In this document: piece after piece, positions 3,354 through 61,491 of the stretch
Layout of the letters: each line of letters opens with the position of its first letter
Numbering within the stretch: the stretch's first letter is position 1
DNA from: Macrostomum lignano
Taxonomy: Eukaryota
Assembly: GCA_002269645.1 (NCBI GenBank)
Contig: NIVC01000321.1
Location: 1-61,823, forward strand
Length of the DNA stretch: 61,823 nucleotides
Direction of reading: 5' to 3'
Program-made: the position numbers and the translations under genes
The notes under the pieces: model-generated
Databases searched by the model: none
The model's input: the letters and a program-made list of their open reading frames with translations, nothing else
Told to the model about the DNA's origin: nothing

Positions 3354-3825
<472 letters not shown>

Positions 3826-30147: not shown

Positions 30148-30148
30148 G

Positions 30149-31230
30149 TGAAATAGATGCTGATTTCTTCCCGGATTAGGCCCTTGTGGATTACCTTAAA
30201 TCTCGAGCCTCTTCAGAGGGAAGTTCTCTTAAATCTCTCAGTAGCGTAGGTAGTGCTGCCACCAGTTCCTTCAGGTCTCAGCCTTCGGTGAGGTGAGCTT
30301 CCCGTCGGAACAAAATAATGAAGTCAACAAACACAGCACTGCGTGCAGATTTAGAGCGCAACAAATAGGGCGTCTTGTCAGCAGTACCTGCCAGGCTAGG
30401 ATGGTAGAGGGAGGGCTGAGTTAGCCTCTCGTAGACTTGGGTTGACTTGGTCGGGTTTCAGTCGGAGCAATAGGAATAGAATCGATATGCGCAAAGGCTT
30501 GGACACTTGGGATTTAGTTACACGCAGACGTAGAACTCGAGGTTGAACAGAAAGAAGCCTCCTTGACGGAAACAAGGGGGAGAGAGCTCTTATTTATAGC
30601 TGGGAAACTCCCGCGCTCAAGACCTCGTGACTTGTTCTATTTTTAGAACTGACATCACTCGAGAATCTCGGGCAGGGTACAAGCGCACGGAAGACCTCGT
30701 GACTTGTTCTATTTTTAGAAATGACGTCACTCGAGAATCTCGGGCAGGGTACAAGCGCACGGAAGACCTCGTGACTTGTTCTATTTTTAGAACTGACGTC
30801 ACTTGAGGGTCCCCCGGCAGAGTGCACATGGCTGTGACTTAGTTGCTATTTTTAGCAACATGAGTCACTCCTCTCCTTAGAAAAGGGAGGGGTCCGAAAG
30901 CATGTGACTCATCCGGTAAACAGGGCCAGCAAGTGCAGTAAACATGTTTACTGCACTTTGAGACTCAGAGAACGCAGAAACTGTCATGTGACCAGCTCAC
31001 AAGACAGGGAGACAAAGACTGACGAAACAAGGACAGCCCGCAACAGAGAAGTTGCGGGCTGAGAAACGCAGGGCAACACGGGCAGAAGAAAGGGAGGGGG
31101 CAGCAACAGACAGCCAAGAGGAGGGAAGCGGGAAGCTGCCCAGCGGCAGACAGCAACCCAGGGCAAGGGCGAGGGCAAGGGCAACTGCTAACAAAGTGGG
31201 ACGCCTAACATTAACTAGCGGATCACTACA
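30149..31230 (-). repeat. 5' LTR (1082 bp, three copies of the 72-bp motif)
   Basis: Differs from the 3' LTR by one 72-bp unit and 9 transitions counted by eye. Confidence 0.97.
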
Positions 31231-32690
31231 CTGCTCTAATTAGTTTCCCATTCTCACCCTTTTCTCTGGTAGTTTTAGTTATAATAATATTAGTTTTTAT
31301 TATATATTTCAATGATATTAGAACTCAGTAAAATACAATAGCCTAATATCAAGAAATGATATCCTATCTTTGCCTCTAACTATATTTTGATTTTCCTAGA
31401 TCTACTAGTTACATTTTAAGATTTAATTTTCCAAAAGGTCTAGAAATTCAATTGTTAGATATTGTTAGAAGATCTAGAAGTCAGCTAACAAAGACCATTG
31501 ACTAGCAAGGTAGCCAGTTTTCTATATATTGCAGATCACTTTTATAATTGCACAAGGGCTTCAATAGCTTTAAGAAATGCTTCTAGCTTAAGTAGATGCT
31601 GCAAATTAAAAGCAATAAAAAAGCAGACAAGTACAATGATGGTATCCATCATATAAATATAAATCATTTAAATCTTTAACCAAAGATGCTAAGAAAAAGT
31701 TAATACGTGCCTTTTTGAACATATTATTAGTACAAATAAAATAAAAAATAAGCTCTTTTGATGACTTCCAATATTCAGGAATAATAAGAATAATAAAAAT
31801 AAATAACATAATTTATGCTTTGTTTTGCTAAACAAATAGTATAGCAAATTTCTGATTCATTTTAATATAATATTTAATAAATTGCATGATTACATAGACA
31901 CACATACGCACATGGACAAACCATTTTTAGTATATGGATCTCACTAGTTTAGTCTATTTGAATTTGACTTGGCTCATTACTATTTTTACTTCATCTATAG
32001 AATGAGAAATACAATAAAGATAAAATTACTTTTGGGACAGCAATTATAGTTACTATTAATTAATGTCTGAAAAAACTATGAAGTATAGTAGTACCTTACA
32101 AAGACTAAAGAAATGAAGTGTAGCCACTGAACTTTGGTGGTAATCAAGGGCATTCTACAGGCCATTAGTGCACTTGCACTGGGGTTCTTGCTGCCACCAA
32201 TGTTTAAGAACAAAAACTTAGAGTCAAATCACATAGTACATTTGCCGATGCACAATGGCTGACAAGCAATTATATATAGCCAGTGAAAGGTTAAAATGAC
32301 TCACCCAACTGGGGTGGCAAGTGGCATGTACAGAGTAAAGCAAGATGTAAGTAATTCGAGAACAGCTCCCACACCTGACAGCAAAAATCATACACAATGT
32401 CACACTAATAAATCTTTGTTTATCTTCAAGAGCTTATGAAAAAAACATATTCTACTTAAAGTATGATTGTCAAAGTTTATATTGAAAATTTTCATCTAGT
32501 TGCTCTTTAACTCATTAGGTTAGCTATTCCTTAGCTACTGATAAAGAATCTGTGAATATTAGTTAATAACTAATTCAGTACATTCAGTACTTTTTAAGTT
32601 TGCCAGGCTTGATTTTAGCCACGATTAAAACAAAATAAAAAGTTTCCTGTAAAACAAACTTCTTCTGCTCCAGACCAGTTGACTGTTGCC

Positions 32691-33170
32691 ATGCCGCTGC
32701 CAGCCTCATCACTGAGCCTGCTGCTCTTGTCTCCCAGGAGACTAGCAATCCCAGCCTCCATCTGTTGCTATCGCCAATTTCAAACAAGCCAATCGCTGAA
32801 TAAAAACAGCGGCAAGCCCCGATTGAAGACCATCCCAGTGTCCAACGCTTCTCAACGAGTTGCCCGCGGCTCCGCGGCCGCCTCAGCTCAGGCTCTGCTC
32901 AACCTCACGCCTGAGGCTTTGAAGAAGAAAATTGAAGAGCGCAACGCGGCTGAGGCTGCCGATCCCAGACGGGGTCGCCAGCCGGAAGCGGAGTGCCACC
33001 TCCGCGACCTGTTCGAGCCGAGACGCCTGCCATTGGTGGAGATTCTACGAAGGCATCGAGAGTTTGCCTGTCCAGAGATGCTGGACAATCCGAGCGGTCA
33101 GCTGTATGCCACTTGCTTGTTCGACATGACCTCTGTTAAGCAGGGCAAGTTTATGGCTCCGTTCTCTAAG
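32691..33170 (+). CDS. MRPL1: Mitochondrial ribosomal protein uL1m exon 1 (includes presequence-like N-terminus)
   Basis: ATG 32691; LFEPRRLPLVEILRRHREF..DMTSVKQGKFMAPFSK; donor GTGAGA phase 0. Confidence 0.85.
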
Positions 33171-33800
33171 GTGAGATACTGTTAGAGATCCCTATATTAT
33201 CTTCATCTTCATAGATTTAAGAGTGAGTTGTAGCCTAGTGAGAAGAGCCTCGGACTCACGACTGGAAGATCTTGGACTGGAAGTCCTTGGACTGAACAGC
33301 CGTAGGCAGCCTTTAGATGCGCCGCGCAATAGCTGCGACTGAGCTGTCGGTTGCACATCTAGCTATTGGGGTAGATGTAATCAATTATTATTATTATTAT
33401 TTGTGTCGTCGTGACGCAGCACGACAATTTTGGCATCCTGATTTTTTGTGTTTTTTTTCCAAGCTGGATACGTACGGTTAAATATGCTGGTGTTTTATTT
33501 GATTTTGAGCTTTTTGACTGACGTCAGCTAGCAATCCTTAGTTTGGACCTAGGATGCCAAGCAATGCTGTGGTTCTGACGCTTAAAAGTTCAAGAAAGAT
33601 CTAAAGATTTACATCTCTTAAGGTTGAGATTTAGACTCCTAAATCAATGTCCATTGGTGAGATTTGAGGGCCCTTAAGAGGTAGTAGGCTATACAAAGCA
33701 GGTTGGTATTTAAACAAAAGATAATTTGAATATCGATTTTTGATCACCTGGCGTTGCCTCAGGTGCTTGCAGCCGCCCCTGAAATTATTATAGAATTTTC

Positions 33801-34665: not shown

Positions 34666-35455
34666 TGGTTTTGACAATCAATATGAGAAAATGGACAATC
34701 AAAATGAAAACAGCCGTAGATCTGCATGCAGCAGCTCAGCTCAGCTTCGCAGCAGCTGCGGCTTAGGCCATAGACTTTTTGACGATCGAAATGAGAATTG
34801 GACAATCAAAATGGCAACGGAAGCAGTGTGCGCGTTTATTTGAATGAAATTTTAACAATAGAAACGAGAAATTGACAACAGAAATGGCAACACAGTCAGA
34901 AAAATGATGGAAACACAGCAGTCGTGCAGCATAGGTTCAGAACTCCTGCCCAGCAAGGCAGCGTCCAAGCTGACGGAAGCAGCGCAATTCCCACGCACCT
35001 GCCTTGTCCGGAGTCACGGCTTCAGGCAATGACTCACGCGCCACTCTCTCCAGCAGCATGTAACGCCACTCTTCCTGGTTCACGCCTTCTGGGGCAACTG
35101 CCTCTTCCCCAACGATGTCAGGCTGCGCCAGTCTGCTTTTGATCTTGGCCTTGAGGCAACTGTTGGCGAATTCCGAAGGGTTCAGAAAAGGTGAATATCC
35201 CGGAAGAATGCGGATGGACACAGCGTGCTGCAAACTGGAGAGATGGCTGAGAAAGATGGCTGGCTAATGCTTAAATATGCTGCCTCGCTAAACTAACCGC
35301 GCGTTGCCATTTTGATTGTCCAATTCTCATTTCGATCGTCCAAAGTCTTTGGCCTAAGCCGCAGCTGCTGCGAAGCTGAGCTGAGCTGCTGCATGCAGAT
35401 CTACGGCTGTTTTCATTTTGATTGTCCATTTTCTCATATTGATTGTCAAAACCAA
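34666..35455 (-). mobile_element. Internally deleted IS630/Tc1/mariner-type transposon with about 165-bp TIRs
   Basis: TIR pair at about 34666-34830 and 35299-35455; remnant ILPGYSPFLNPSE matches the LPPYSPDLNPIE motif. Confidence 0.82.
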
Positions 35456-35492
35456 ACCAAATATTATCATTAAATCTGCCATATTGCCGCAG

Positions 35493-35797
35493 GTGATCCG
35501 GCTTCCCCACGCTCTCCCGGAGTCCTTGGTCCGCCAGCACACGGTCATCGCTTTCTGCTCATCGCCCGAGCTAGCCGAAGATCTCAAAGCCAAAGGCGCT
35601 ATGGATGCTGGCGGAGCCGACCTGCTTGGCAAACTGGAGACTGGCGTCTACATTCAAGAGAACTTTGATTACGTCATCTGTCATCCAGACTTTTGGCCCA
35701 GTCTGTTGAAAGCTAGAAAACTATTGAAGGACGCGATGCCTGCCCAGAAATCGCCTCAGATATCTGAAGATATGGAGTCTGCTTTGATGCTGTACAA
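35493..35797 (+). CDS. MRPL1: uL1m exon 2
   Basis: Acceptor gccgcAG; VIAFC..GAMDAGGADLL..FDYVICHPD; donor AA|GTAGGT phase 2. Confidence 0.9.
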
Positions 35798-36179
35798 GTA
35801 GGTTAATAATCGCTTCTGTGTGTTCTTAAATTTTGAAGTAGTCACCCGTTACAAAAGTATATGCCAAGGCTTTAGTTACAATATATACTTGATTTGTAAC
35901 CAAAAGGAACAGAAATAAATAAATTAATTATTTTTTCTAGGGGTACATCAATGCAATATTTTTGTTATTAGGGACCAAAGTGATATACGATATTATACAT
36001 ATCTGAAGCTTTTTTTCAAGTTTTATAAGAACGTATTAAATAATATTTAACATTACTTGTCTGAGGTTAACAGAGCATTTTCAAAACTCAAGTTCCACTT
36101 TTCGATTTTGATTTCTAACTCATTAGAAATTAGCTAAATTAGCTCTGCTGACTTAATATAAGAATTTTTGTTTTAATAT

Positions 36180-37216: not shown

Positions 37217-39425
37217 TTAGATTGTCAAAAGTTGATCAAGATGCTCGGGTGGCGCCATGTATTTCGCGGCAATGAGTTGTTGTTCTGCCGCAAATCTGTA
37301 GTCGACGGTGACTCTTGAGCTGTTGTCTCTTATCGTGGCCAGCGATGAGTCTGTTAACAGTCTAAACTTTTTTATCCACCCACGGCTTGGTGTTCGGCTA
37401 AAAAAATTGAGCAGGAAAGGAGGCTCCACGACGAAAGGATTTCCCTTTGGTGGAAAACAGACCATAGCTGGCACTATTGCCTTCAGGCCAGAAGGCGAAC
37501 ACTAGTGTTACAGCCATGGTTTGCTTGCTCGTAGCAGAAGAGGCGACGGGGGCGTGCTGTTTCGCTGTCGCCGTGGAAGCGGCAGCCGGGGCGGGGGCGG
37601 TAGAGGTGCTTTCGCGGGAGCCTGGCAATCAGTTCCGTCCGGGAGCTCCGGCTGAACGAGTTCGCGGCGAGCCAGTCAGGCAGCCCTCTCGATTAGGGCC
37701 TGGCAGTCACCATCGGCCAAGCCGCGCAGACGGCCCTAGTGCGGCCATTCGACGAAGTCTGGCCAGTCACCGTGCTGGTTGGCCAGGTCTTATTACTGCC
37801 GGGTGAACAGCCCCGTCCTCGAGCAGATCTTGTCGACTGGGTTCGACGGCGGGGTCCTGGCTAAAGAACTGCTCTGATACAGTCTTCTGCTTCAGAAAAA
37901 TTTAGAATAAATGATACTATGCAGATCAAGGAATGACACGAAATAGACAGATGACCTAGATGACCTAGCATTTAATTGGCAAAATGGAGAATAAAAAGAC
38001 GGCAAAAACACTAACACAACACAAAATACAAAATTAAGCATGTAAGTAAAAAAATTATAACCAGCATGAAAAATATACTCGTACGTAATGTTTATAATGT
38101 TCTTTAAATCTATATAAACCGATAACAGCTTCACAATTTTTTTTAAAGATAAAGGCGCTTATGCTTCTTCGGAATTTAGTAACATTTCCTATTACTATAA
38201 GTACAGCAAAGCTAGAAATGAAAAAAGCGTAGCAAAGCGTGGTGCGGGAACTTCAAATTAGGATTTTAAAGATACAAAGCATTTTCTGTGGAAAAAGAAA
38301 ACAGAGTATACAGCTAGAGCTGTTTATTGACGTAAATTTGTTTATTGAAGATAGTTAAAGTCACTTCAATAGTTTAATACATATAAGCACTGCTGCACGC
38401 AGACTCTGACGTCTCATCTATGTCCATTCCATCTATGTCTTTTCGGTCGCTTCTGTCGTCTTTTTGCAGCATGCTGTTTTTTCGAGCCTGGCTTTGACTG
38501 ACACTCGGCAAATTCTCGTTCTTTGCGCCATGTGCAGAAGCGCTGGAATCAATCATGCTGAGACGCTTGAAAGTAGTTCGCGAAACTCTTGCAGCTGGAA
38601 TAGAGCTGGCCGCTGCTGAGCCAGAATCACCTACGCCAGCACTCCTTCTATAAGGAGATAATAATATTAAAAAATGCACATGTATTCAACTCACTAAATC
38701 TAAAACGTGCTCAGATGACTGGTACTGCGCAAAAATCGCATAATCAGCACAGCAGCTAATGGGCCAGAAGGTTGATGTTGGTCTCTGGCTTCAGGATTCA
38801 TCAGTGCAAGCAGCCGCTACAATTTAGAAGCGACTCCGTTCATCTGATCAGTGAAGTGACTCTGATGATCCTCAAGGCGGCTGCACCTTATAGCCAGTTC
38901 ACTAAGAGTTGTGAGCTAAACAAATAAAATGCCTCGAAGAGAGTCCAGTGGGACATCCACAACTGCCTGGAATTGCTCCCCTAGTATTTTTTTGCAGCTG
39001 GTCTGAGCGGGTATGCCGGCTCTGGAGCAACAACAGCCGCAGTGGCGACTTTCTCTGCCACAGCGGCTCTGCTCAGCGTTGGCTTTGGTGTTGGCATTTT
39101 GTCGCTGAGCGCGACAGTTGAAGCCCTTTCCACTGCCACTGAGGTCTTAGGTATAGTAGAATCATTGGTAGCTAAAGCATCTAATGCAGGAGCAGCCGCT
39201 GGCGTCGCTGGATCATTCACCGACGTCGCAGGACTCGCAGGTGCAGCCTTCTGAATCTTGGTCAATGGCGTCGGATATTTGTTACTCGGTAGTGGCAACA
39301 ACTGATTTTTAGTGTCCGGTAAAACTGTGTCCGAGATCAAAAAGCGGAATTGTGGTTCTCCTCGAAATCGGCTGTCTGCTCAGAGTAGAAGCCGTCTGTG
39401 TATGAGGCTGAAGCCAGTTGCGCAT
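37217..39425 (-). pseudogene. Decayed three-exon orphan gene (about 39425-38695, 38647-38381, 37886-37217)
   Basis: 47-nt GTGAGT..TTATAG intron at 38648-38694; second intron GTATTA..CAG joins in phase (AT|A); Pro/Ala-rich, then coiled-coil-like, then globular segments; in-frame stops. Confidence 0.55.
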
Positions 39426-42050: not shown

Positions 42051-43213
42051 GTAGAAAAATAGCATTGAATTATTTGATACACTTGGATTAAAATTAATTA
42101 ATTGGAATTGGAAGGAACAGTGAGTAGCACGGGGTCTAAACGAGTGTATTTATAATACACTAAAGGAAAAAAGAAGTTGAGCGCGCAATGGAGGAATGAG
42201 GTGAGATTGAAGAGCCAATTAGAAAACAGCAAGTGATAGATAAAGTTCTGAAGTGGACTGAAGAGTGGAACTTAGCTTTACTTGTCCTTGTTAGTAATAT
42301 TAATGGATAGTAAAATAAAATATCCATCCTAAACTAAAAACTAAAAAACTTAAAGATTAAAAGTGAGCAATAACTTGTATGCTTTAAAAATTGTCTATAA
42401 AATAATAATTTACGTACAGCCATGAACTGTGCAACAAAGAGGCCATAATATAGCTGAGGGGCTGCCAAACCTAACCGAAGTTTTTCTGAAGCTTACACTG
42501 GTATAACCCCTTTATAGCTTGGTAAAAAAGAAATTTAGTGTCATATAGAAATTTAGTATAGTTGAATTTGATGTAAATTATTGTATTAGGTCAAGAACCA
42601 AAGAGTAGAGACCTCTTGTTTAAGAGTCCAATACTCTAACCACCATGCTCTAGGCTAGGCCCACAAGTCCCTTAAATTTTATACTCAGTATAGTAGACAA
42701 TATATTGTGCGAATATTGCTATATAATGCACAAATATGCGCATGCATGACATGGCCTTATAATCCAGACATATGCCTAGCATAGTAAAATACTTGAAAGA
42801 AAATAATCTTACATTGATAAAAGTCTGATATTGTACCCTTAATGCTGCTTAGAGCCATACTACTGCGTGACAGGTAGTGGTATGTTAAGGACATGTTTCT
42901 AATAAGAACCAACAAATCCTTCATATTGTATATCTTGTATCTGCATTCGGTCATCCACAAAATCTTCCAGATAATCTATCTGCATTATCTATCCATTACA
43001 ATCGGTCAGTCATCTATTGGCAAACGAATAAATCATAATAAAACAAAGAGCGCTAACATGTACATGTTTCATAATTGACTAATCAACAGAAGTCAAAATG
43101 CAATTGCACTTTAAAAATTAATGGGAATTGGAACACTACTATCGAACATTTATCTCTAATATGAGGATTTATGTATCTACAAGTTTTGAGCACTTTGTCA
43201 TCCCACACCGCAG

Positions 43214-43532
43214 ATATGGCATACCCGCTAAGCTGACCCAGGCCGGGGACCTGCCAGACCGAGCCCAGTGCCGCGTGCCCTTCGGTCTGCTGGACTGGCC
43301 CGACTACAACTTGAACGAGAACCTCTCAGCCATTGTAACCGGCCTGTTGAATGAGAAACCAAAGAAATCCAATCGTGAATTCATCATGTCAGTCTCGGTC
43401 ACGTGTCCTCCGTCTGACGAGCTGTTCCTACTGGATTGGAAACCGTACACCATTGCGGCAGATTCTTCAAGCAATGCTGCTGACAGGGTAGCACCGGATA
43501 CGGCTGATGCTGTTGCGGCTTCTGCTAGTTAA
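43214..43532 (+). CDS. MRPL1: uL1m exon 3
   Basis: Acceptor accgcAG; FGLLDW..ENLSAIV..EFIMSVSVTCPPSDELFLLD; total CDS 1104 nt, in frame; AATAAA 43596-43601. Confidence 0.9.
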
Positions 43533-47047: not shown

Positions 47048-47337
47048 AACTATACAAAAGTTACAATACAATAGTTACCAAACTATATGCCAGAGCTGTA
47101 GTTACTACCAGGATGTAACCACGTTTTGGTCGCGGGATCATGTGGGGAATTTTTCGAAATGTCCCAGATCCCCTTTGACCCACTGGGCAGAGCTGTCGGG
47201 ACTGGGCCGGGTCCCTGCCTGACCAGACCGACTGACTCCTGACTCAGCCACACTTGCCTTTCCGGAGCCCCTTTTTGTGCAACTCCGCCTGCCTTCCCGT
47301 TTCTCATGTTCCCCACCCCATTTATCATGTATTTCTC

Positions 47338-48090
47338 TTGACTTACTTTGACTTAGCTGCAGGGCTGTCCCGGAGGGGACACAGTGGGAAGGCGCGAGCG
47401 CCCATTCCGCTAGTCCCTGAACGGCCGACGCGTCGCTATGGACGGAGGGTTGGCGCCGCCCAGGGAGGTCCCCCAGTGTCGCCAGCAGCTATGGTGCTCT
47501 CTGGAAAGGAGAGTTCAGCCCTGCGGGTGGCCCGAAGGTAGCGCATGAGCTGATTAAAGTTTTCGGGTTTGCACGCTTCAGTAATAGATGTGTGTGGCCC
47601 GAGGTAAGTGAGTCTGGCCCGCGTGAAGGCGGGACAGATGCTGACGAAATGCTCAGCGGTTTCGTCACCTGAGTTGCAGAAACTGCAGGTGGCGTTGGTG
47701 GCGTTGCCCTGCAGGTACTGGTGCCTGGAGAAGCAGCCGTGACCAGAGAGGGTCATGGTGGCAGCCCGGATGTCTCTGCGCGAGAGGCGCAAGAGAAGCT
47801 TCCGGAGCTGGTGAGAGGGCTGAGGGACAGCGCCTCTGGATTGCCTGCAGTTCGTGCGGTTCGCCCAAGTCGAGCGGTGCTGAGTCCTGATCCACGCTTT
47901 GATGCGCGAGTCGATGACACAGCCAGGAATCGGGACAAGAGGTTCGGGGCCGAGAGAGGAGCCGGAGGCACCAACTTTTGCAAGGGTGTCAGCCAACTCA
48001 TTTCCTCGGATCCCCACATGCCCCGGAACCCACTTAAGGGTAATTTTGTTGGCGGAACCCAACACGTTGAGGAGTTTGATACAGTCGAGG
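47338..48090 (-). mobile_element. 5'-truncated LINE (RNase H end, Cys-His, tail), related to the 4.9-9.7 kb element, 11-bp TSD ATGTATTTCTC
   Basis: TSD 47327-47337 and 48091-48101; WVPGHVGIRGNELAD; CSFC..EHFVSIC; TAAGTCAAAGTAAGTCAAG tail. Confidence 0.93.
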
Positions 48091-48356
48091 ATGTATTTCT
48101 CACGTTCCCCATCTTTTAATCGTGCATTAGCGAGTTTTCTTGCGCTTTCCCCTCCTCATCCCGTGCCTACTTAGAGTATTGTTTGTGCTCAGCGTCACCC
48201 CATCTCCTTTTAGGATCCCAATTTGTGACGCACGGTAGGTTCCTGACCCTGACACGATGACTCAAGTGATTTTCGGCGTGAGAACCAAAAATTTCTCGTC
48301 CTATCTTTGGACTTGCTGTCAGACATTGATCTGACCCATTCGTCTATAGGACGAAC

Positions 48357-50132: not shown

Positions 50133-52114
50133 AAGCCTTCGGGCCTCAGGTCTCAGAAATAAATCAATTAGAGTCCTGGCCCCCCACTCCTGTCAGATGG
50201 TCAGCCCCATGGTAGCTTGATCGTGTGGCGAGCAGTCTAGGTCCTATAGCTAAGAGAGGGATAGCGAGAGACAAGCAGGGAGAATTTTGAAGGTAGAAAT
50301 TAGCTAATCCGCAGACTAAGCTAACTCGCTGCCACCAGCCCGTGCGTCCTGGCTCACCACACCGGGGCTCTCGAAATCGGGCTTCCGACTAGAGGGGGCT
50401 TTGCATTTACCTGCCAACTAGTGTCTTTTTGCTGTCAATCTCGAAGTCATAGCCGATGATAAGGGACACTGCTGGGACTAGATCGCATTGGCCATGCAGG
50501 TACAGAGGGGACTTGTGCAGGGGATTCTTGCAGTGGCGAGTCTATGGGGTAGCTACATGTACTATTACATTGCTAAATACGAGGAATTGTACTTTTGGCC
50601 TTTAACGCGCCAACCAGCCTCTCGTAGCGCTGATGATAGACTAACTCGAACTTCAGAGACCTCGCACGATTCATTACCCGAGCCGCTTGGCGAACCTAGA
50701 GTGCACAAAGTACATCTCTGGTGCCGATTCTGCACTTCTGGCAGTTTTGCTCACTGATTTGATTGATTGATCGACTGAGAACTGCTTTGCCATTGGTCCA
50801 CTGTGACCGGCGCCTACTAGCTTAGCTATTCATCTGAGCCATCGGCGAACAAAGAAATAAAACCGATAAAAATAACTGTTAGATTTAACCTTCTCCTCAA
50901 ATCACTTCACACTTCAGATTGAATTGGAGTTTCAGACTACTAGAAGTATTATTGAATGACTTCTGCCTCGATTACAGCACTACTGAACAAAATGAGCAAA
51001 AGTGTGCGCCTAATTCAGCTACTGAAACAGGGGACAGATAAGGGATCACCCAATCAAGCAAGTCTAGGTAGCCCCTCACCCAACCAATCAGAAACTCAAC
51101 AGCCGGAGACCAGGAAATCCACAGTGACCGAATCGGCTTAGTGCTTCGCAGCTGTAGATTCGGGATGATGCTGACACAATCTTCGCTGATAGCTAGCAGG
51201 TGATGATCTTAACTTTGATGTTCGCTGCTGATGACCGGGGGACTCGTCCTTGATGATGATGGGGGAAGTCGCAGTCCTGGGATCAAGAAACGACGGTCGC
51301 GCTCCGGGATGCCTCAAGCTAGGCTAAGGTCCCAGGAGGTGAGCGCAAGTCCGGAAGGTCGGAAGGTTGAGGTCCGAGTGGGCCAAAAACTCCGGTTTAA
51401 ATAGCCGCCAACTGGACCGCAGTTTGTTATAACGGAACACGTCGATTCTGATTGGCTGAGCCGTTTTGTTAAAATGAGCGCCGAATTTTCTGATTGGCTA
51501 AGCTTGTCGCTACCCAGAATCACGTGACCGAGAGATCCTATCAGTTCCCACAGGGTCGTAAAGAGATGACAGGTGCGGCCATAAATCACTCAAAATCGCA
51601 ACAAAATGATTTATGACTTTTCGCGTAGGATTGACAGAAATTAATGAAAAAATATACATTAGAAAGCTCTTATTAAATAGAAAGTGAAGATAATGAAGAG
51701 AAATCGCTAATCGCTAATCCCAAAGTACTTTTAGGGGTAAAACGTATAGCTGTCAAAGCTGTCACACGCTTGAGTGAATCCGAACAATAAGCTCTGACCT
51801 CATAAATCTTGATGGCCTGTCAAACTGATGCGAAAAAAGCTACCGCCCGCATCCTCTCAGACCATCTGGCGCCCGTTTCAACACTGAGTGAGGCGCAGGT
51901 GGCTGTCAGACCAGCTTCGAAAGCGATGATTTATGACCCAAAAAGCAATGCCTATGTTATTATGACTACTAGTATGGCCAGACATTATATCTAGTATAGA
52001 TTCTATGACTATTCGCAGAAAAATGATAAAATGCCCACTGCCCACTGTTAGTAGGCAAGTAAGTTTAGAGCCCATGTGCTAGCGCGGGATTTGGGAAAAA
52101 GTGCGTCCTCATCA
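50133..52114 (-). mobile_element. About 2-kb LTR-like dispersed element, copy 2 (no MITE)
   Basis: Highly similar to 12784-15272. Confidence 0.6.
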
Positions 52115-52924
52115 CGTTGCTTTAGTTGTCCTTGGCAGAATTGCCTTACTGCTGGTTTTGCCTATAGTAGGGGCAATGACGCTCCAATTGAAGGGATAAC
52201 CTAGGAACGAAATTGCATATATGACACCTTAATAAATATATCCAAGATATTAGGATGCAACCATGACGCAATTAAAAAGTCTTTTTACACTACTGCAAGT
52301 AGAAATGATAATATATCTTTTCACAGACCCAAACGAAGAGTTAAACAAAATTACCCAAAAATTTTCATATCTTCGATACAGCATGCAAACAAAAATAGGA
52401 CGAAAACTGACTAAAAAACTAAAAGTAAATTCGTATAATTAAAAAATAATTTCAAAGCTCTCCATTTAATCCCATATATTGACAGCGCTAGTTAGAGATG
52501 CTGAGTGTAACGGGTCAATCTGTCTACGGCATTCGTTGTCGGCTATAGTGCATCATACATGTAATTTCTGCATTTGATACTTGATTCGGTATTTGACAGG
52601 TGTGATAATTAGCTAAGAATGGGAATTAGGAATGTTTCTACGAGTAGGAGCGTAGGAATATGGATGTCTTTTAGTTTTCATGCAGTGGTTCGTTTAAACT
52701 GCATATAATATTCTTACTGAAAATGGTATATTAATTCTATCACACGCTTACATCGTTGTGCAAATATGCAATTAGTTTTAAATGGTGAAAGTATTATAAA
52801 ATTAATAAAGCTACTGAAACTTTTAAGGGCGTAGGAAAAGAAGCAATATACTTATTTGTTATGTTTTTTCAATAAGATAGATGAGCGTAGTATAGTATAA
52901 GCATTTACATTGCGCTTTACAAGA

Positions 52925-53739
52925 TTACATTTTAAAAGTGCAGTTAAAGTTTTTGCATGAATACAATTTGCTGGCTTCTGTCATGCGTTGATAAGCTTGG
53001 CAGAGCTGTTTAGAAGCGTTTTTTGGAGCCGCCTCTGCTCCGCTGGCGAACCGCCACTGGTGTAGCCACGCGCTAGAAGGAGGCTCATCGAAAAACTGCA
53101 CGTGAATTTGCTTCGAGCAGAAGCTCTTGGTGCAGTTTGTTCCGCGCCGGGGTAGGCAAACCATCGCCGGCCACCAGTTTTCTCCATCTGTTGGCCAGTA
53201 ACCTAGTACAAGCGATCCAGGTTGAATTTTCTGACGCTTGGCTGCACTATCGGCTGGAGCTCGAGCTGGCGGTCGCTTTCTAGCTAGGCGACGTCCTGAT
53301 CCTATGTGGACAGCGACATCAGCGGAAGCGTTGCCAGCGGCGGCATCGGCAGCGGAGGCTGAGGCGACGCCATCGCCAGCGGACGCGGAGACAACAGCGC
53401 CATCAATGTCGTTATCGCTGTTGCCGTACAGCTGGTTTACTATACCATTGAGATCCTCCGAGTCAAACGGCGAGCAGGACGGCGTCCGACAGGACGGTGT
53501 CAAGCAGCACGGCGCCAGCCACGGTGTCGCTAGGCACAGCGGCGCCAGACACGGTGGCGCCAGGCACAGCGTCGCCAGGCACAGCGCCACCAGCGGCAAG
53601 CAGGACGGGAGCAGTTTTTGCCATCGGCACGGCGGAGGAGCCCTGGACGCAGTCGCTGATGGGCCCGCAACCGACACGGAGTCCATGTCAGCAGACGGCA
53701 GATTTTCCATCCTATGCAGAATGCTGTCCAGGTCGTAAT
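52925..53739 (-). CDS. Crypton-like gene, last exon: low-complexity linker plus PWWP domain
   Basis: Acceptor ttAG|AT phase 1; GSLVLGYWP..NWWPAMV..IHVQFFDEPPSSAWL. Confidence 0.8.
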
Positions 53740-53960
53740 CTAATGGAGGAAAGATAGAAAGTAGCAAGTTTTTTAAGCGAATTCCTTTAACAAGGAGAAA
53801 AAAATTTAGAACTGACCATCTTTTTTATTGCTAAGGTAAATTTTTTTGGTCATTTCTGACAAAATTAATAAATTTCTTTGCATTTATAGCGCATTTTAAT
53901 CGTACGGGTTATTCGCAAATTCTAATTTCCCTCAAATGCTAGCAACCATGCTGTACTCAC

Positions 53961-54123
53961 TGTCGCCATCGATGCCGCCGGCGAGTTCGTTGGCCGCCCT
54001 CTGCAGCCGGCTGCCTTGAATTGGAGCTTTGGCGCTCAGGATGTCCTCTTGCAGCGCTGTCGCACTCGACGCCAACTTCTTCGTTAGGTCACGTCCTTTC
54101 TTTCGCCTCTCCTTGGTCTGGCC
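53961..54123 (-). CDS. Crypton-like gene, exon after the catalytic Tyr
   Basis: aaacAG|GGC phase 0; donor A|GTGAGT phase 1; 163 nt. Confidence 0.75.
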
Positions 54124-54239
54124 CTGTTTGCATTTTCAGACGGGATTGCAGGTTTGATGGAGTCAGATCAGTAAAATTAATAAAAAAAATACGATATTGT
54201 TGGGCTGCGCCCTTCCAGTGCTTGTGTTTTCAGTTTTCA

Positions 54240-54960
54240 TGCCACCCCGCCCCGTCCCCCGTCTCGCGCCCGGGCCAGGGTTTGTGAGAGGCGTAAGCCT
54301 TAACCCTGGCCTAGCCCTTTCTGCACCCAGTCCCCGGCGCAACTTCTGTCCAATCTAGGTGCTGACCCTACCCCCTCCCTCTTTGCCCGCCTCACCCTGG
54401 GGCTGCTCGTATTGGCTTGGCTGGCTGAGAAGCCGGCTGGGCCCCAGGGTTTGGCTCGCCCTCTCCATTCTGCCCCACCCCTCCCCCCTTTTTTGTGTAA
54501 ATATTATTTAAGGGCCCGCCCTGAGCGTGCTGCGCTCCACGTTTCTTTCTTTTTGTTTGTATTCTATCCCGTTCTTCGGCGTCACTCTGCAAACCTGCTC
54601 TCTGCAAGCTAATAACTCGACTCCCGCAATCGCTGATTATTCTGCTTCGTGCCAATAAACGCTTCGCCAATAAACGCTTCGCGAATAAGTCTGTAAACGC
54701 AGAGGTGAGCACGTGCTTTCGTCTTTTGGGTTGCCGCGTGGGGCCGGGAGCTGGTAGGGACCTGAGACCGGTAAACACTCGCTGATCTCAGGGTGGTCGG
54801 TCCGGCGAACTCTCGCCGAGCCGAGCGAAGGGCGCGTAGGAGTAGCCGGGGTAGAGGGCTGGGACCGGGGTGTCTTAGGCGGGAGGACCCGAACCCTGAC
54901 CCGTCCAGCGGCCATTAGGTCGAGACACAACAATATAATACTCGTAATGGTGTAAACTAC
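54240..54960. mobile_element. GC-rich LTR-like insertion in the Crypton-like intron
   Basis: Composition shift and repeated AATAAACGCTTCGC; ends not resolved. Confidence 0.3.
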
Positions 54961-55159
54961 ATTCGTACATTGGTGCAAGGGCTCAAATGCGCAGCTTTAA
55001 TGACTGAACCTATGTTATATGCAGCTATTCAGTGTATTGAATTTAGTTCTTATTCAGGACTATTTAGTTGCTAAGGCATCCAATTTTACGCTTAAAATGT
55101 AATTTTTGTAGTTTCAGAAGTCTTCTGTGACAATTATTTAGCAAATTTAGCAATTTTAC

Positions 55160-55622
55160 CTGGTAAAATTGGCGCTGCACACCTTCGTTGTGATTCTGGT
55201 GGTCAGCCATGAGCCGCTGTTCCTCCGCAGAGCAGTTCGACAGGCCCATGACTTCCAACCATTGCCGAAAATTTGAAACGGTAACGTTCTTGAGCAGTGG
55301 AGAATACCTTTCTCGATATTGATAGAACAGTCTATCAAAGGACCCGTAAGGAAATACGAGCGCCAGGTCATCGTCCTTTGGACGCTCAGCGAAGCGCTGG
55401 GCCAGCAGCTGCATGAGCAGGTCGGCGCAGGGCGCGACGCTGGCCCAGGCCGACCATGCTTGGCGTTGGACTTGTGACTTTGCACCTTTAACGGCTCGTT
55501 AGGTGCTTTGAGCCACCTTGAGCCGGGCGTCAGAGATTAGGCAGGTAGAGGCTACGCCTTGCCGGTTGGCATTTCCATCACCAAAACAGATAACCATGCC
55601 AACGGCCAGGTATGTCACCGTC
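55160..55622 (-). pseudogene. Crypton-like tyrosine recombinase catalytic exon (compensating +1/-1 shift or one stop near 55500)
   Basis: NANRQG (Arg), VQSHKS..HG (Lys), TVSNFR (Arg), MADHQNH (His), RQFYQ (Tyr); 463 nt keeps phase 2 to 0. Confidence 0.8.
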
Positions 55623-55820
55623 CTGTGCGGATGGAATTAGAGGTATTTATTTATTTAGAGGTAATTTTCTGAGCTGTCTCAGATTTCTGTAATTTCTGAG
55701 CTAATAAAATTTGCAGTGCCATTCTGAATACCAGTGCTATTTTGAATTCCAGTGTCATATTAAGCCCCATCAAACTTTTATACCTCGGCATAAAAAGCAT
55801 TGGGAAAAAATTTAACTCAC

Positions 55821-56790
55821 CTGTCCTTGGTTGATCGCGCTTCTGCCAGCACAGCGTCTTTCATCTGAAAGACTGCTGCAATCTGCTCGCCTGTGAGCAA
55901 TTCTTCCTCTCGGCGGTCAACAAGCTTCGCGTAATATTCAGCCTTCGACCCCATTGAACTTGCAGTCCAATATTTTGTGGACTGCCTGTACGAGGTCAGC
56001 TGTTGGTGCATCCCACCGTCTACGATCTGCTGGAAACGGCGGGTAATTGAAAAATTACCGAATTTCTCAAGTGCGGACACCATTTGTTTTAGAATCGAGT
56101 AGGACAAACTGTTCAGGTACTCGCTAATTTTATCGCGCAGATCTTCGCTGATCAGCTGATTGAAGCTCGTAATGTCTAGACGCTGCATTAGCCGTTTGAG
56201 GTAGCAGCGGATCTCGCGGAACGTAGCCGGCTTTTTCCGTCCGCCGAGAGAGCTGGCCAGGAAGACGCAAAGTGCTTCCACGTCAACTGTCGATGGGTGC
56301 TCAGCCACTGCTGCTCTGGCTGGCACTTTGGCCCTGGCTTCGATCAGTTTCTGCTCTTTCTCGGCTCGGACTACGCTAGGGTGGCTGTTTCGCTTGTGGC
56401 TGCTAAGCTGATTCGCGTTGTTCTTCCATTCGCCGCAGACTGCACACTGTAGTGCCGTCTCGGGCATCGGGCCAGCAGTTCTTTGGTGCGTATGCAGCTC
56501 AACTGCAGCTCGCAGCGCTTGCAGAGCTTTTCTCTGCAGAGCATCTGCTGGTTACTGTGCATTTACTGTGCAGTTGCTGCTAGCTTTTCTTTCGTGCTTT
56601 CTTGAACAGCTGAGTGCGCCCTTTTGATGTGTTCGCTGAATCTGGATTCTTTAATTGGCATGCAGCTGCCGAACGGGCAAATGTATTCTTGCCCGGCCCG
56701 CGTTTTCTTTGGCTGCTGGGTGCTGGCGGGCTGCTGGGTGCTGGCGGGCTGCTGAATGGACGACTTTGTCCATTTCTCCCACTGCAACAA
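55821..56790 (-). CDS. Crypton-like gene 5' part: two C2H2 zinc fingers plus recombinase core-binding domain (stop/duplication near 56565)
   Basis: YICPFGSC..HIKRAH; CAVC..HKRNSH; FLASSLGGRKK..ALEKFGNF; donor AG|GTGAGT at 55821. Confidence 0.72.
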
Positions 56791-57130
56791 TTTTTCAATA
56801 AATGTTTTATCTATTGGAATTGAATTGAATTGAATTAAATAAGAATTGAAGGAATGATGCGAAATATAAATTCGAGAAATAGATTAAATATGCAAGAAAG
56901 ATGCAAGAAAATATGCTCAAAAATGGGGATGAAGTCAGTCGTCAATAATTCAAAGAGAAGATGAAATTTCATTGGTCGCAATCTTGACTCCACTATGGTG
57001 ACTAATTAAAGTTTATAATTTTACATATTTGGAACTGCTTGACACGATTCTTTACAATAATGGCGCAATCATAAGTTTGGTGCAACAAATTTGCTTAGAT
57101 AGGTATCTTCCACCATGAACCACCTATCAC

Positions 57131-57346
57131 TTTCATTGTTTAGCAATTTGACAATCATTATTCACATTTTTAATGCAGAACAATCCATTACTACAAACAA
57201 TGCATTGTCTGTAGGATCGTCAAACAGAAAAACAATGCAAAGAATCAGCGGTCGCAGCACGTGACAACGATTTGTCTATGGCTCGCGCCTACCGGCGCTC
57301 GCCAGACAATCGTTGTCACGCACTGGGACCGCTGATTATTTATCCA
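57131..57346. repeat. 216-bp dispersed hairpin repeat, copy 2
   Basis: Matches 12391-12606. Confidence 0.9.
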
Positions 57347-57683
57347 CTGAGCATAGCGCAATCTTGAGCATACTCAGAGCACGTATTTGCTTTTAAACAA
57401 TCGTGAAAACTGCGATTACTATCTTTAGCTCTATGGCAGAAAGGGAGACAACGAAAGGCGCTTGGTGAGAACACAGGTGGCACAATTGAGCCCAATGCCA
57501 AAACACAAAGACAAAAGGACACGAAAGAAAACGAGTACAAAGCGAAAAAACACCGAACACGAAGATTACGAGCATAACAACAGGAAATAAAACATTACAA
57601 AGGCAAGCAAGGACAGTAAAAGCAAAGGAACCGACGAAGAAAAAAGAAGTTAACAACACGCACAAAAACCATGAATGGCTGAG

Positions 57684-58746
57684 TTAGCAAAGCCTCTGCA
57701 CCGCCTGAGCCATCTTCTTGGCAGCTCGGAAGGATAAGTCACTCTCAGGTCGCTGCGCCAGTCGCTGCGTCGCTGCGCCAGTCACCGACAGCCTTGATCT
57801 CATCCTCTGCCAGCTCAGCTCGAAGGCACCACGTAGCGCCGCCCCGCCGCAGACTGTGCGCAGAGTACAGCACACCCTGGCCCTGAAGTCCAGCGCAGCG
57901 CAGGGAATTTCGGAGAAAGCGCACGAAATAGGAAGCTGACAGATTGACCCGCTTTGAGCCGCTTGACGCTGAGAAGAGCGGGGTGGACGGAGCCGAGATG
58001 CCATTGACACGTAGGTGCCGCATCATGGCTTCAGTCGGGCAGAGTGGGTGGCCACCGGACAGTTTCGGCAGCAGCACGCGGTGCACCCGGGCTCCGAACT
58101 GGTTGGTTTTACTGTGCCTCAGGCTCAGAACCAGGCCGGATGGCACTGCTCTCAGGTCCCTTCGCTGGAGCGCTTGCACTCCTGCTGACTCGGGAACAGG
58201 CTGGATTTGCGCAACATCGCCCACCAGCCGCACAGGATTGCCGCCCAGCATGCAACGCCTCGTGGGTCGCTATCGTGAATGGTGCGACGAATGCGAAGCA
58301 GGTCGTCAGGTGAGAGGGCCTGAGCTCGCCGTGGGTGCCGCTGAGGGCGCGCCTGGAGCCTCGAACAAGGAGGAGCACAGGGGATGCTTCGTGATGTCGA
58401 CCGCGCTGGCGGATCTTAGAAAAGCAGAGATTGCGCTGAGATGTACTCGGAGGCTACTGGGCGACCAAAGACGAGTGAAGCACAGCTCCGCCAGGTAGTT
58501 GAGTAACGTGGCGACGGTAGAGTTGACCGGATCGGTGCCGACAGCCCGGCAATGCCGCAGCCAGGAGGCGACGGCGGATGACAGTGACCGCCTTGAGCTG
58601 CTAGCGTAGGCGAGACTCAGCAGGCGGCGGGCTTGGGGCCCGACGTGGCTGGCGGCTGCAGGAGGGAGGCGACCTGAAAATTGAGAAAGCGACGGGTGGC
58701 GGGGCAGAGGCAGTGAACTCTTCATCATCAACATCGAGAGTCCCAT
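57684..58746 (-). pseudogene. Ngaro-like tyrosine recombinase, frameshifted, catalytic Tyr region overwritten
   Basis: MLRKSSL; SKTNQFG; HSLRRGGAT; GDWRSDA followed by a duplicated GACTGGCGCAGCGAC. Confidence 0.88.
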
Positions 58747-60313
58747 AGACCCGACACAGAAAATTTACAAGCTGACTGCGGCTATGCAACCGGGAACCCG
58801 GGTCGGCCAACAACTGAAAATTTCCCGGGACGTGCAGCACCTTCAGATCGAGTTCATTTTGAACACAGAGCAGAGCCAGCTGTTGCAGCAGCCGGAGAAT
58901 GATGGGTTCTCTAGACGAACCTTTATTGCCGTTGTCGCAGAAAACGCCAATACGATAGCCAAAAAGCTGGCTACCCCAGCAGATGACCGCGAGAAGGACG
59001 GTCACAGCCTCCTTGTAATTAATAGGAAGATTTTCGTACTCGGCCTCAGCATCAGCTGACCAGTTGAAGTAGAGCCAGTCCCGGCAACCATTCGAATCTT
59101 GGAGAATAGCAGCACCGCCTAGACCGCAAGCATCTGTCTCCATGGCGAGGCAGGGCTTGTTTGGCTGCCAGGTCAGTCTAGATCGACGGCTTTCCAGCGC
59201 AAGGCGCCACCAGAGTAAGCAGCTGTGCAGTGGAGTGTTCATCTTGACTCGATGACTCGGGCTTTTCAGTGAATCGGCAGCGTCGAAGAGGTCCCTCAGG
59301 AAAGGCCTCCCGTGAGGTACAACCTGCGCAGCCCAGTTCAGTTTGCCAATCACCCTCCGCAGAATCCACTTGGAAAGCCTCGGCTTCGCCAGGCAGTCTT
59401 TCAGCAGCAGCTGCAGCTCTTCCAACTTTTCGGGCGGTAGCGACATCGTTCCAGCCACAGATTCGAATCTGATTCCCAAGAAAACCATGCACTGAGTCGG
59501 TGGCACACATTTCTCTTCGTTGATCTCAAATCCGAGGCGCACAACGAGACTCTTGAGCTCCAATAGAAGTCCCTGCATTCAGTCAAGGAACCGCAGAAGG
59601 CTAAATAATCAATATAGGCCTCCGTGTTATTGAAACCGCGTTTGATCATCATGAGTCTGATGGCAGAGCTCAGCTTTTGAAAACAGTAGACGGAAGCCGC
59701 TGCTCCGAATGGAAGCCTGGTGTCTATGAGGTAGACTGGCTCGCGGCTACCAGGAGGCAAGTACTTAATTCCGGCTAGCATCTGATCATCAGGGTGGATC
59801 CCGCACGAACGGTAGGCTTGGCTAAGGTCAACTTTACACATGTAAGAGCCGGGACGCAGTCTTCTGCTGAAGTTCGTAGCGGATGTCAGACGGAATTTTG
59901 AAGGCATTGAGTCGTTAACCGCGAGTCCCTCAGGCCGGCTGCAATCGTAAATGAGTCGCACTGAGGCGGATCCAGGCTTAGGAATGGCTCCCAAGGCACT
60001 GACAATCTGGGGCTTGATGCCAGTCGGGCAGCGGCGATACCGACCGCGCAGAACTTCTTTCTGGATCTGTGCATCGGAGGAATAATAGTTCAAGGAATAA
60101 TGTTCATGTTAATGTTCAAGGAAGGATGTTCAAGGAATAATAGTTTTCCAGTTCGATGTTTGGCTGGGGATCACTGCATATCTTGTTAGTAATGCGGAAT
60201 CCATGAGTTACACCAGAAATTATAAAACTGGCTTCATCTTTGGAGATATCAATTTCTTCCAATTCTTTCCAGGCTTCAAGATGCATGTCACTCGATAAGC
60301 AAAGATTTTTCAT
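58601..60313 (-). pseudogene. Ngaro-like RT plus RNase H
   Basis: KVDLSQAYR, LPFG, YID(Y); METDAC, INYKEA, FCDN, ADPGSR. Confidence 0.92.
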
Positions 60314-60393
60314 AAAAACTATCGGTATTGACGAGATTTTCTAGAGTTGAGATAGCATTTTTGTTGTGGGAGTCGCTCTGAACAGCTGATTCA

Positions 60394-61491
60394 CTAAGGG
60401 GATACGGGGGCGACTCCTGATGTTCCCGTGCCCCTGAGTCCTCGAGTCATTGGCGTGGAAACTCCGGATCCCCTTCGCGGTGGAAGGAGGCTTCGGAGTG
60501 GCTCTGGCCGCACCGGCGGCATCGGTGAGCAAATCGGCACTGAGCTCTGGAGCAGCACCAGCCCGGTTGAAGTCAAAACAGATTCCCTGGCCTCCTTTCG
60601 AGTTGCACGAGCGTTCGCCTGATCCGATTTGCCTGGCGCCATCAGGTACGCTGCCACAAGCCCAAGGTCAGATGCTGGCTGATTCCAACTCTGATTCTGC
60701 TGCTTCTGCGTGCGACACTCGTCATCGAACCGCATCACCTTCGGCCGATCAAAGCCAAGATCGAACAATTCGCCAACCCGAGCATTAATGCGAAGATACT
60801 CAACCAGCTCCGAAACATCCACGGTTCCCGTCTCGGAAAGACGCACCAGCTTGCTGTCATGCAACATGTGAATCAGCGCGTTCGCGTTTCCAGTAATCCA
60901 GTCACCGAATGACATCGACTCAACAGCCGCTGACTTTGACTTCATACTCACGTGGCCCGATTTATCGACTGTGGTGGCCAACCCGGCATCCTTCTGCTTA
61001 CGGCTACTTAGGTGTTCCACCGGCCTGTACGCCCCTCCGGCAACTGTCCCTTCTGACTCAAGGTTGGGGCCCTCATTCAAAACCCTCTCAGAAAGGCACG
61101 ACATCTCACCGGGGGGATCATTGCGTCTCCGTAAATCGCGAGCGTCAGCTTCTAGAGCGGTTTCTTGCTTGCGCAGAGTCAGAGGCGCACCCTCTTCTCC
61201 GCGAGCTCCAGCTCCTTGTCCAGGTCGCCTCCCACAGCGCCAGTCGGGCCCCTGCCGCCGCTCCAGCCGCCTTGAGGCTCAAAGGCCGCAGCTCCACGTC
61301 CGCTGCTTTGACTGCTTCTGGAAGTGTTGTCCGTGTCTAGTTCTTTTTGCCGTGGATCAGTGCGGCATTGAGTTCCAGTTGCGTTGCTTCGTGATGAGCA
61401 GCAAGCGCTCCCTGAGTACTTCCTTACAGCCGTTTGCAGAGAGGCCTGCCTGTCTAAGCGCGGCCTTCAGGCCTTTCACAGTCTCGGGCAT
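60394..61491 (-). pseudogene. Ngaro-like gag with N-terminal SAP domain
   Basis: MPETVKGLKAALRQAGLSANGCKEVLRERL at 61491; EYLRINARVGEL..VMRFDDECR. Confidence 0.75.

Follow-up and report, generated by a model that had tools for sequence, protein, structure and literature searches.

A putative decayed copy of an undescribed family of tyrosine-recombinase DNA elements, with probable PWWP exons, in the flatworm Macrostomum lignano

Eukaryotic DNA transposons that move by means of a tyrosine recombinase are rare and poorly understood. The closest described systems are the Cryptons, which have been proposed to integrate as circles that cross over with a short target site; most CryptonS elements end in ...TATGG and have terminal direct repeats of 5–6 bp (PMC3212892). 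The locus described here lies on the minus strand, at positions 52925–56790, of a stretch of 61,823 nucleotides from Macrostomum lignano (assembly GCA_002269645.1, contig NIVC01000321.1), which we refer to as the window. It encodes, in this order, two zinc fingers, a helical N-domain, a catalytic domain with the residues R-K-R-H-Y, a linker and a PWWP domain. We regard it as probable that the locus is a decayed mobile-element copy of an undescribed eukaryotic tyrosine-recombinase DNA family that probably gained the PWWP exons. The element family is the solid part of this interpretation, and the PWWP fusion and the chromatin targeting are its speculative part.

The minus strand of the locus displays four GC-rich blocks (53–61% GC) alternating with three AT-rich introns, and the introns and flanks have a GC content of 30–34%. 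The segments are as follows:
56566–56790, minus strand: 5' coding segment with zinc finger 1 (YICPFGSCMPIKESRFSEHIKRAH, 56614–56685), in a frame that differs from the rest and with no in-frame ATG
55821–56551, minus strand: rest of exon 1, with zinc finger 2 (C2H2, 56381–56452) followed by a core-binding-like N-terminal domain that is helical throughout; matched by the family profile from which the window row was left out
55623–55820, minus strand: intron 1, GTGAGT...CAG, phase 2, 34% GC
55160–55622, minus strand: exon 2, the catalytic domain, recognised by invariant family columns, profile matches and the recombinase fold
54124–55159, minus strand: intron 2, GTAAAA...CAG, phase 0
53961–54123, minus strand: exon 3, 54 codons, 61% GC, basic and then an acidic tail, no in-frame ATG
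53740–53960, minus strand: intron 3, GTGAGT...TAG after a pyrimidine tract, phase 1, 31% GC, with AATAAA at 53824–53829
52925–53739, minus strand: exon 4, with a low-complexity linker, a basic KRQK stretch, the PWWP domain and the stop at 52925–52927, from Pfam, PDB and Tandem Repeats Finder (TRF)

A first-pass annotation made from the sequence alone had placed the three introns in phases 2, 0 and 1, and their coordinates, GT..AG ends and open frame were verified. The frame that starts at Met 56467 crosses all three junctions and terminates at 52925, interrupted on the way by a single stop codon near 55500. GTRAGT occurs 23 times on the minus strand of the window (3.7e-4 per nt); because the motif is so rare, the two perfect GTGAGT donors found exactly at composition boundaries are not attributable to chance. 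Introns 1 and 2 are independently confirmed, since the spliced product aligns colinearly, over both junctions, with relatives that have no introns, and the donor of intron 2 is positioned directly after the ...Y-Q of the family. Intron 2 houses a nested, GC-rich insert of 743 bp (54194–54936; 59% GC) with 9-bp inverted ends (ATATTGTTG / CAACAATAT), and measures 293 bp once this insert is subtracted. The insert has no second copy within the window and no Rfam or tRNA match. A family profile built without the window sequence matches the zinc finger 1 segment with 32.8 bits (E 3e-9), exon 1 with 92 bits (E 3.6e-27) and exon 2 with two matches of 43 and 16 bits. The lack of an in-frame ATG makes exon 3 an internal exon. 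The linker of exon 4 contains a 15-nt tandem repeat at 53510–53586 (TRF), followed by the PWWP domain at about 52976–53191, with NWWP at 53171–53182. Codon-position GC did not discriminate between the frames of exon 4, and exact look-ups of 20 open reading frames (ORFs) of the window and of plausible spliced products, among them the one that annotation from transcripts would yield, found all of them absent from the protein collection.

To find relatives of the recombinase, 1.84 billion representative proteins were scanned in full with HMMER, the frame-corrected N-terminal 372 residues serving as the query. Eight relatives were found (E 2.5e-19 to 2e-8; 23–31% identity), and their alignments extend from end to end, through both zinc fingers, the helical domain and the C-terminal domain. 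A protein search with a trimmed alignment recovered only two of them (P0005 and P0007), a scan of metagenomes revealed one further member (L006), and a scan of viral contigs gave zero members. No annotated ortholog appeared among 15 billion proteins. The locus points to a family that is small, undescribed and unrecognised by current profile libraries (Pfam, PHROGs). Some relatives are intronless single ORFs on short contigs from metagenomes or the Sequence Read Archive, and one sample holds two divergent family members. Three loci (L006, L007 and L008) bear introns at two common positions, which differ from those of the window copy. Both zinc fingers are conserved across the family. The first-pass annotation had proposed two C2H2 fingers. 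The second is C2H2; the first has the form C-x5-H-x9-H-x3-C/H in the relatives and is CHHC/U11-48K-like, one relative passing the Pfam U11-48K CHHC model, and reads C-x4-C...H-x4-H in the window copy.

The five catalytic residues are found at invariant family columns:
55562–55564, minus strand: Arg-I in GNANR
55471–55473, minus strand: Lys in SHKS, within the frame-shifted segment of the window copy
55265–55267, minus strand: Arg-II in NFRQ
55190–55192, minus strand: catalytic His
55163–55165, minus strand: catalytic Tyr

The R-K-R-H-Y set of the first-pass annotation was thus recovered in full, with the Lys codon in a frameshifted segment. The residues are invariant in 6–7 sequences of 26–48% identity and are embedded in the motifs GNAxR, HK(T/S), (Y/F)R..E and H..V..Q.Y, likewise invariant in the family. 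They are spaced R-30-K-68-R-25-H-9-Y; the corresponding distances are 24/75/23/9 in XerD and 28/91/23/9 in Cre. The His of the canonical HxxR motif is replaced by Thr in the relatives (TNT[AS]YR) and by Ser in the window copy (VSNFR), and the pentad therefore resembles that of type IB topoisomerases.

The structure was modelled with AlphaFold2 (AF2) for the catalytic domain of the relative P0005 instead of the broken window copy, and the model has a predicted local distance difference test (pLDDT) value of 86.3 and a predicted TM-score (pTM) of 0.86. A Foldseek search of BFVD revealed the tyrosine recombinase of a Musca hytrosavirus as the best match (E 1.5e-3, probability 1.00, TMq 0.61); next in rank come integrases of phages and giant viruses, and VLF-1 of baculoviruses and nudiviruses. 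About 20 of the top 26 BFVD matches are named as integrase, tyrosine recombinase or VLF-1, the others being unnamed or uncharacterised. In the PDB, the only matches with a TM value above 0.4 are poxvirus topoisomerase IB, the SSV1 integrase and Cre, and a full-length model matches XerA with a probability of 0.99. The N-terminal domain is helical in the AF2 model of a relative. From the modelled fold we conclude that the middle domain is a divergent member of the tyrosine-recombinase/topoisomerase IB superfamily.

The sole named relative, P0007, is a hypothetical protein of M. lignano whose 90%-identity cluster comprises three members on three contigs. The element copies are:
NIVC01000073.1, 8481–16903: M. 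lignano element copy L001
NIVC01000217.1, 7692–15640: M. lignano element copy L009
NIVC01000033.1, 4399–11902: M. lignano element copy L010

These copies have a block of 7.5–8.4 kb in common, with 99.2–99.8% identity, and their spread in length is due solely to the number of 445-bp tandem repeats. All three copies have the same abrupt left and right boundaries, between flanks that bear no relation to each other: two copies lie within genes (UQ_con and TRAM_LAG1_CLN8), and the third has a Miff gene nearby. At the left boundary the sequence is CCAT(A/C)CTTTCC..., and the right end reads ...GGAAAAGCC, with CCAT next in two copies and a junction of ...GGAAAAG-CCAT-GG in the third. CCAT is thus present at both junctions. 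If joined, the ends would read GGAAAAG-CCCCATA-CTTTCC, with inverted arms around a 7-bp spacer, a layout that would correspond to the architecture of a tyrosine-recombinase core site. No ORF resembling a reverse transcriptase is present in 52115–57122 or in the 8-kb M. lignano element. Because three dispersed, near-identical copies carry CCAT junctions, the family represents a recently active DNA element with Crypton-like ends.

Other traits of the M. lignano element were observed alongside. Its 445-bp tandem repeats duplicate the 5' end of the recombinase gene, and it has weak, inverted TTACAG(G) motifs in subterminal positions. Exon 1 of the annotated M. lignano gene model (L001, 9899–10120; MAHRHKTRVLVYWQ...GAFVMYNDENGKSWIGCVGK; MAHRHKTRVLVYWQDQ...KKGAFVMYNDENGKSWIGCVGK) resembles by eye a small beta-barrel of the Tudor/Royal-like kind, and a comparison of this exon with Pfam and PDB gave zero sequence matches.

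The copy in the window is dead and non-functional. Its main lesions are:
56552–56572, minus strand: 11-nt tandem duplication (TGCACAGTAAA/TGCACAGTAAC) with a TAA stop at 56563–56565, identified by TRF, sequence and frames
55453–55518, minus strand: segment of the K motif (APNEPLKVQSHKSNAKHG) in another frame, which aligns to NPNKEFLVANHKTNQIYG of the relatives

Dropping one copy of the 11-nt duplication rejoins the frames of the two zinc fingers, and the TAA remains. The frame of zinc finger 1 has no ATG, the sole nearby one (56771–56773) being in another frame. The K-motif segment can be read only by leaving the main frame and re-entering it afterwards, which places a frameshift on either side; the main frame itself meets a TAA here (55499–55501). 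The first-pass annotation had listed small lesions near 55500 and 56565; both are present, and the list is to be extended by the 11-nt duplication, the two frameshifts and the lack of an in-frame ATG, so that the reading frame carries at least four lesions. A six-frame profile search found no second recombinase-like copy within the window. Because the window copy is dead, the biology of the family is to be studied in intact relatives, with the M. lignano element as the entry point.

The M. lignano paralog suggests how members of the family may move. They would excise as a circle, whose joined ends form the inverted arms around the short spacer, and the recombinase would then cross the circle over with the target at a 4-bp CCAT, so that each junction retains CCAT. 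The window lineage has gained two introns inside the recombinase gene, as shown by its colinearity with the intronless relatives. With a likelihood that we place slightly above even, it would also have gained two further 3' exons, which encode the linker and an MSH6/NSD-type PWWP domain. If made, the PWWP domain could tether the recombinase to nucleosomal DNA or to H3K36-methylated chromatin.

The PWWP domain itself is, as judged by sequence comparison, genuine. It scores 27.1 bits against Pfam PWWP (PF00855; cut-off 25.6) within the full product and 29.4 bits alone, the match spans positions 8–90 of the 93 in the profile, and the best PDB matches are MSH6 (4e-7), NSD3 and NSD2, which bears out the NSD/MSH6 type assigned in the first-pass annotation. 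The MSH6 motifs EGYPWWP and VHVQFFDD are aligned with DGENWWP and IHVQFFDE of the candidate. The residues of the methyl-lysine cage, as in NSD2 and MSH6, include Trp and Phe. Both are kept here, and the first aromatic residue, Tyr in MSH6, is replaced by Glu; because of this replacement, methyl-lysine reading is not to be assumed. Steering of the recombinase to H3K36-methylated chromatin by this domain would be a matter of pure inference, drawn by analogy.

Whether the recombinase and the PWWP domain belonged to one protein is a separate matter. On balance we expect that the intact ancestor made a recombinase–PWWP protein, with a margin over even chance that is narrow. The basis is the perfect GTGAGT donor at the end of exon 3, beyond which the read-through stops after 9 codons, the pyrimidine tract and AG that precede a phase-compatible exon 4, and the composition pattern. 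The fusion, to which we give the same slight preference, is thus argued from splice signals and phase. Cis donors of M. lignano follow the motif GT[GA]AG, and acceptors are trans-spliced mainly where an upstream cis donor is lacking (PMC8629364). The single spliced recombinase–PWWP protein of the first-pass annotation is upheld as far as its junction phases go, and lacks homolog support for the link between exons 3 and 4. Its remark that it knew of no described fusion of this kind agrees with the searched literature, in which no recombinase with a PWWP domain of its own is described, Crypton and PWWP are never combined, and tyrosine recombinase and PWWP are mentioned together in unrelated contexts only.

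Several results weigh against the fusion and favour a different explanation, namely two genes, in which the recombinase ends after exon 2, with a read-through tail, or after exon 3, and the PWWP ORF starts separately from the ATG at 53708–53710. The PWWP gene would then have its own promoter, or be a downstream operon gene whose exon 4 acceptor is used for spliced-leader trans-splicing, and the two genes would look fused only because they are neighbours. We consider this a serious possibility, although one that falls clearly short of even chances. The in-frame ATG of exon 4 has a good context and lies 28 nt past the acceptor, and the AATAAA in intron 3 lies about 85 nt upstream of that acceptor, with the exon 3 read-through closing soon after the donor as described above. 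The donor of intron 2 (GTAAAA) and the acceptor of intron 3 (TAG) are weaker than the M. lignano consensus (PMC8629364), and reading through the former adds a 31-residue tail before a stop (ORF 55064–55414), similar in length to the tails of the relatives. Once the window row is removed, the family profile fails to detect exon 3, so that the case for this exon is made from splice signals and phase; neither exon 3 nor the exon 3–4 junction has homolog support among the family sequences compared. The first-pass annotation had asked whether other copies lack the PWWP exon, and none of the 8 relatives or 11 related loci (L001–L010) carries a PWWP domain, the active M. lignano element closing with AKKRK-rich tandem repeats instead. 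A second PWWP-ending ORF (37217–38679, minus strand; PWWP part 37217–37628) lies 15 kb away, inside an intron of a mitochondrial ribosomal protein L1-like gene. It has the layout ENLPS...DIDG...PWWP-stop, like that of exon 4, matches the PWWP domain of the candidate with a BLASTP E of 1e-10, and has no recombinase-like sequence nearby; a frameshift falls within its WWP motif, and it scores 21.1 bits against Pfam PWWP after a 1-nt repair. The two-gene explanation has to account, however, for the perfect GTGAGT at the end of exon 3 (with the expected frequency given above), which needs an acceptor, the nearest being the phase-compatible one of exon 4. An acceptor with an upstream cis donor is normally cis-spliced, and the TAG is unlike the [T/C]TNCAG enriched at the trans-splice sites of M. 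lignano (PMC8629364). Exon 3, moreover, has no start codon of its own.

A decaying host gene, that is, a domesticated recombinase-derived chromatin protein that acquired introns and a PWWP exon and is now a pseudogene, is an unlikely explanation in our view. It would agree with the presence of introns and with the state of the window lineage, of which the window holds a single copy, its flanks taken by other repeats, with no termini found. The single copy, the lack of termini and the absence from the window of the terminal motifs of the M. lignano element also count against our preferred interpretation as a mobile element. The search for copies, termini and direct repeats that the first-pass annotation had suggested thus succeeded for the M. 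lignano paralog and gave, for the window lineage, this one copy. The relatives in three other samples have two conserved intron positions in common, and Crypton-derived host genes fused to other domains set a precedent (PMC3212892). All five catalytic positions are kept, however, whereas they are lost in the domesticated DUF3504 genes (PMC3212892), the closest named relative is mobile in M. lignano, and the window copy is full of lesions, is set among transposon insertions and has no annotated ortholog. Least probable by far is that the middle domain is no recombinase at all and that R-K-R-H-Y is a coincidence in a helical DNA-binding protein. What speaks for this is the failure of profile searches: Phage_integrase (PF00589) and DUF3504 gave no match at E<=10 with the window protein and 9 family sequences, PHROG integrases gave none, an hmmsearch of PDB sequences recovered zinc fingers only and no integrase, hhalign against the recombinase of the neighbouring DIRS-like element returned nothing (probability 0.1%), and the PDB Foldseek E-values (0.4–9) are not significant alone. 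Against it stand the integrase, tyrosine-recombinase and VLF-1 matches in BFVD, the restriction of the better PDB matches to topoisomerase IB, SSV1 integrase and Cre, the five invariant residues with a recombinase-like spacing, and the crossover-type 4-bp direct repeats at the ends of the carrier element. A bolder extension of our preferred interpretation is that macrostomid flatworms harbour an unrecognised superfamily of intron-bearing zinc-finger recombinase transposons, recently active in M. lignano, one lineage of which captured a PWWP exon and by this means targets itself preferentially to H3K36-methylated or transcribed regions; this we judge to be distinctly improbable.

The recombinase unit is confined to 52115–57122, between a 227-bp repeat, beyond which a DIRS-like element follows, and a 1.9-kb repeat. 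The neighbouring features are:
57745–61104, minus strand: DIRS-like retrotransposon, immediately upstream, a separate insertion
12383–12609 and 57123–57349: 227-bp repeat resembling a miniature inverted-repeat transposable element (MITE), copies 97.8% identical, with an internal 34-nt inverted repeat
12784–15272 and 50133–52114: 1.9-kb dispersed repeat, 92.5% identity, sharp ends

The DIRS-like copy comprises gag (60394–61104), reverse transcriptase (59401–60093), an RNase H/MT-like ORF (58601–59578) and a recombinase split by a frameshift (58306–58746 and 57745–58251) with the motifs HSKTNQ and HSLRRGGAT. The 227-bp repeat has a 153-bp match of 85.6% identity on M. lignano contig L001 (4903–5039), and the 1.9-kb repeat, which bounds the unit on its 3' side, has CCAAT and TATA-like motifs on the minus strand. 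Because both repeats have sharp ends and unrelated flanks, the true termini of the window element may lie beyond them. Their interpretation as LTR-like or empty-site marks was rejected, since their order differs at the two loci and the flanks are unrelated.

The window is genomic DNA of animal type, crowded with transposons, and its remainder holds further mobile elements and host genes. A Ty3/Gypsy-like long terminal repeat (LTR) retrotransposon occupies 21261–31232 (minus strand), with gag, protease–reverse transcriptase–RNase H (25524–28610) and integrase (23990–25366); its LTRs of about 1 kb (21261–22272 and 30149–31232) are about 99% identical, implying an apparently young insertion. A long interspersed nuclear element (LINE) at 4938–9570 (plus strand) encodes endonuclease/reverse transcriptase (5659–8406) and an RNase H-containing C-terminal ORF (8707–9570), and is flanked by related satellite-like arrays (4557–4890 and 9668–9951); a diverged RNase H fragment of the LINE kind is found at 47337–48095 (minus strand). 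Exons of a GWT1/PIGW-like host gene (3334–4389 and 10064–10498, minus strand; Pfam GWT1, 57 bits) adjoin a long microsatellite of the (CAGAC)n type at about 3.3–3.9 kb. The mitochondrial ribosomal protein L1-like exons (32679–33185, 35418–35801 and 43128–43532, plus strand) are scattered across more than 10 kb and separated by introns rich in transposons. Scanning the window for Rfam families and tRNAs gave zero matches.

The family is directly testable, as M. lignano is a laboratory model with transgenesis and offers near-identical copies, defined ends and a 4-bp crossover. If the PWWP exon is part of the transposase, it would represent a new solution to the choice of integration sites, parallel to chromodomain integrases and to LEDGF-tethered lentiviral integration, and if the self-targeting superfamily outlined above were real, it would include the first transposon to encode a PWWP targeting module of its own. 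Should the PWWP domain prove separate from the transposase, the locus would still serve as a useful marker in annotation of the family, and would illustrate that in-phase GT..AG joins are no proof of fusion in a trans-splicing organism.

A comparison with known systems reveals both common traits and differences. In chromoviruses (Ty3/Gypsy elements with chromodomain integrases) and in lentiviral tethering by the PWWP domain of LEDGF/p75, a Royal-family reader steers the integration enzyme. These are DDE integrases with a fused chromodomain or a host PWWP protein acting in trans, whereas the candidate is a tyrosine recombinase with a PWWP domain possibly of its own. The DIRS-like recombinase has the HK(T)/HSKT beta-hairpin Lys motif in common with the candidate, and both belong to eukaryotic tyrosine-recombinase mobile elements. 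The neighbouring DIRS copy, however, combines gag and reverse transcriptase/RNase H with an HxxR recombinase (E 0.03 and 14.5 bits against Phage_integrase, versus a cut-off of 27.1 bits), while the candidate has no profile similarity to it and, lacking a reverse transcriptase, does not belong to the DIRS elements. The type IB topoisomerases that poxviruses (vaccinia, variola) encode display the same R-K-R-H-Y pentad without the recombinase His-II and are among the best PDB structural matches (TMq 0.46–0.48), but are outranked in the viral library by recombinases and integrases. Because of its core-binding-like N-domain and the mobile element with crossover-type ends, the candidate fits a recombinase and not a relaxing enzyme. 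The DUF3504 host genes (ZMYM2/3/4, QRICH1, KCTD1, KIAA1958 and WOC) contain a recombinase-derived module spliced to chromatin- or DNA-binding domains, as proposed here, yet they are intact and conserved and have lost the catalytic residues (PMC3212892). The window copy has kept these residues, is a pseudogene and has no DUF3504 match; on the first two grounds, it is not a domesticated gene of the DUF3504 type.

The Cryptons (CryptonF/S/A/I; PMC3212892) remain the nearest counterpart. In both groups the recombinase is the sole enzyme, with no reverse transcriptase, and introns occur in some copies. The M. lignano paralog likewise lacks long terminal inverted repeats, has a short direct repeat (CCAT) at both junctions and, read on the other strand, has a terminus in ...TATGG as do most CryptonS elements. 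The family recombinase has no detectable similarity, however, to those of Cryptons or to DUF3504, and of the Crypton tetrad R-H-R-Y it retains R, R and Y, with Thr or Ser in place of His-II. The Crypton-like transposon of the first-pass annotation is thus sustained by the mobile paralog and its CCAT ends, and not by the DUF3504 domain or the tetrad. No recognizable domain beyond the recombinase has been reported for animal Cryptons (PMC3212892), whereas the family has two N-terminal zinc fingers and the candidate a possible PWWP tail. As far as its sequences indicate, the family behaves like a Crypton functionally, yet is not a Crypton by sequence.

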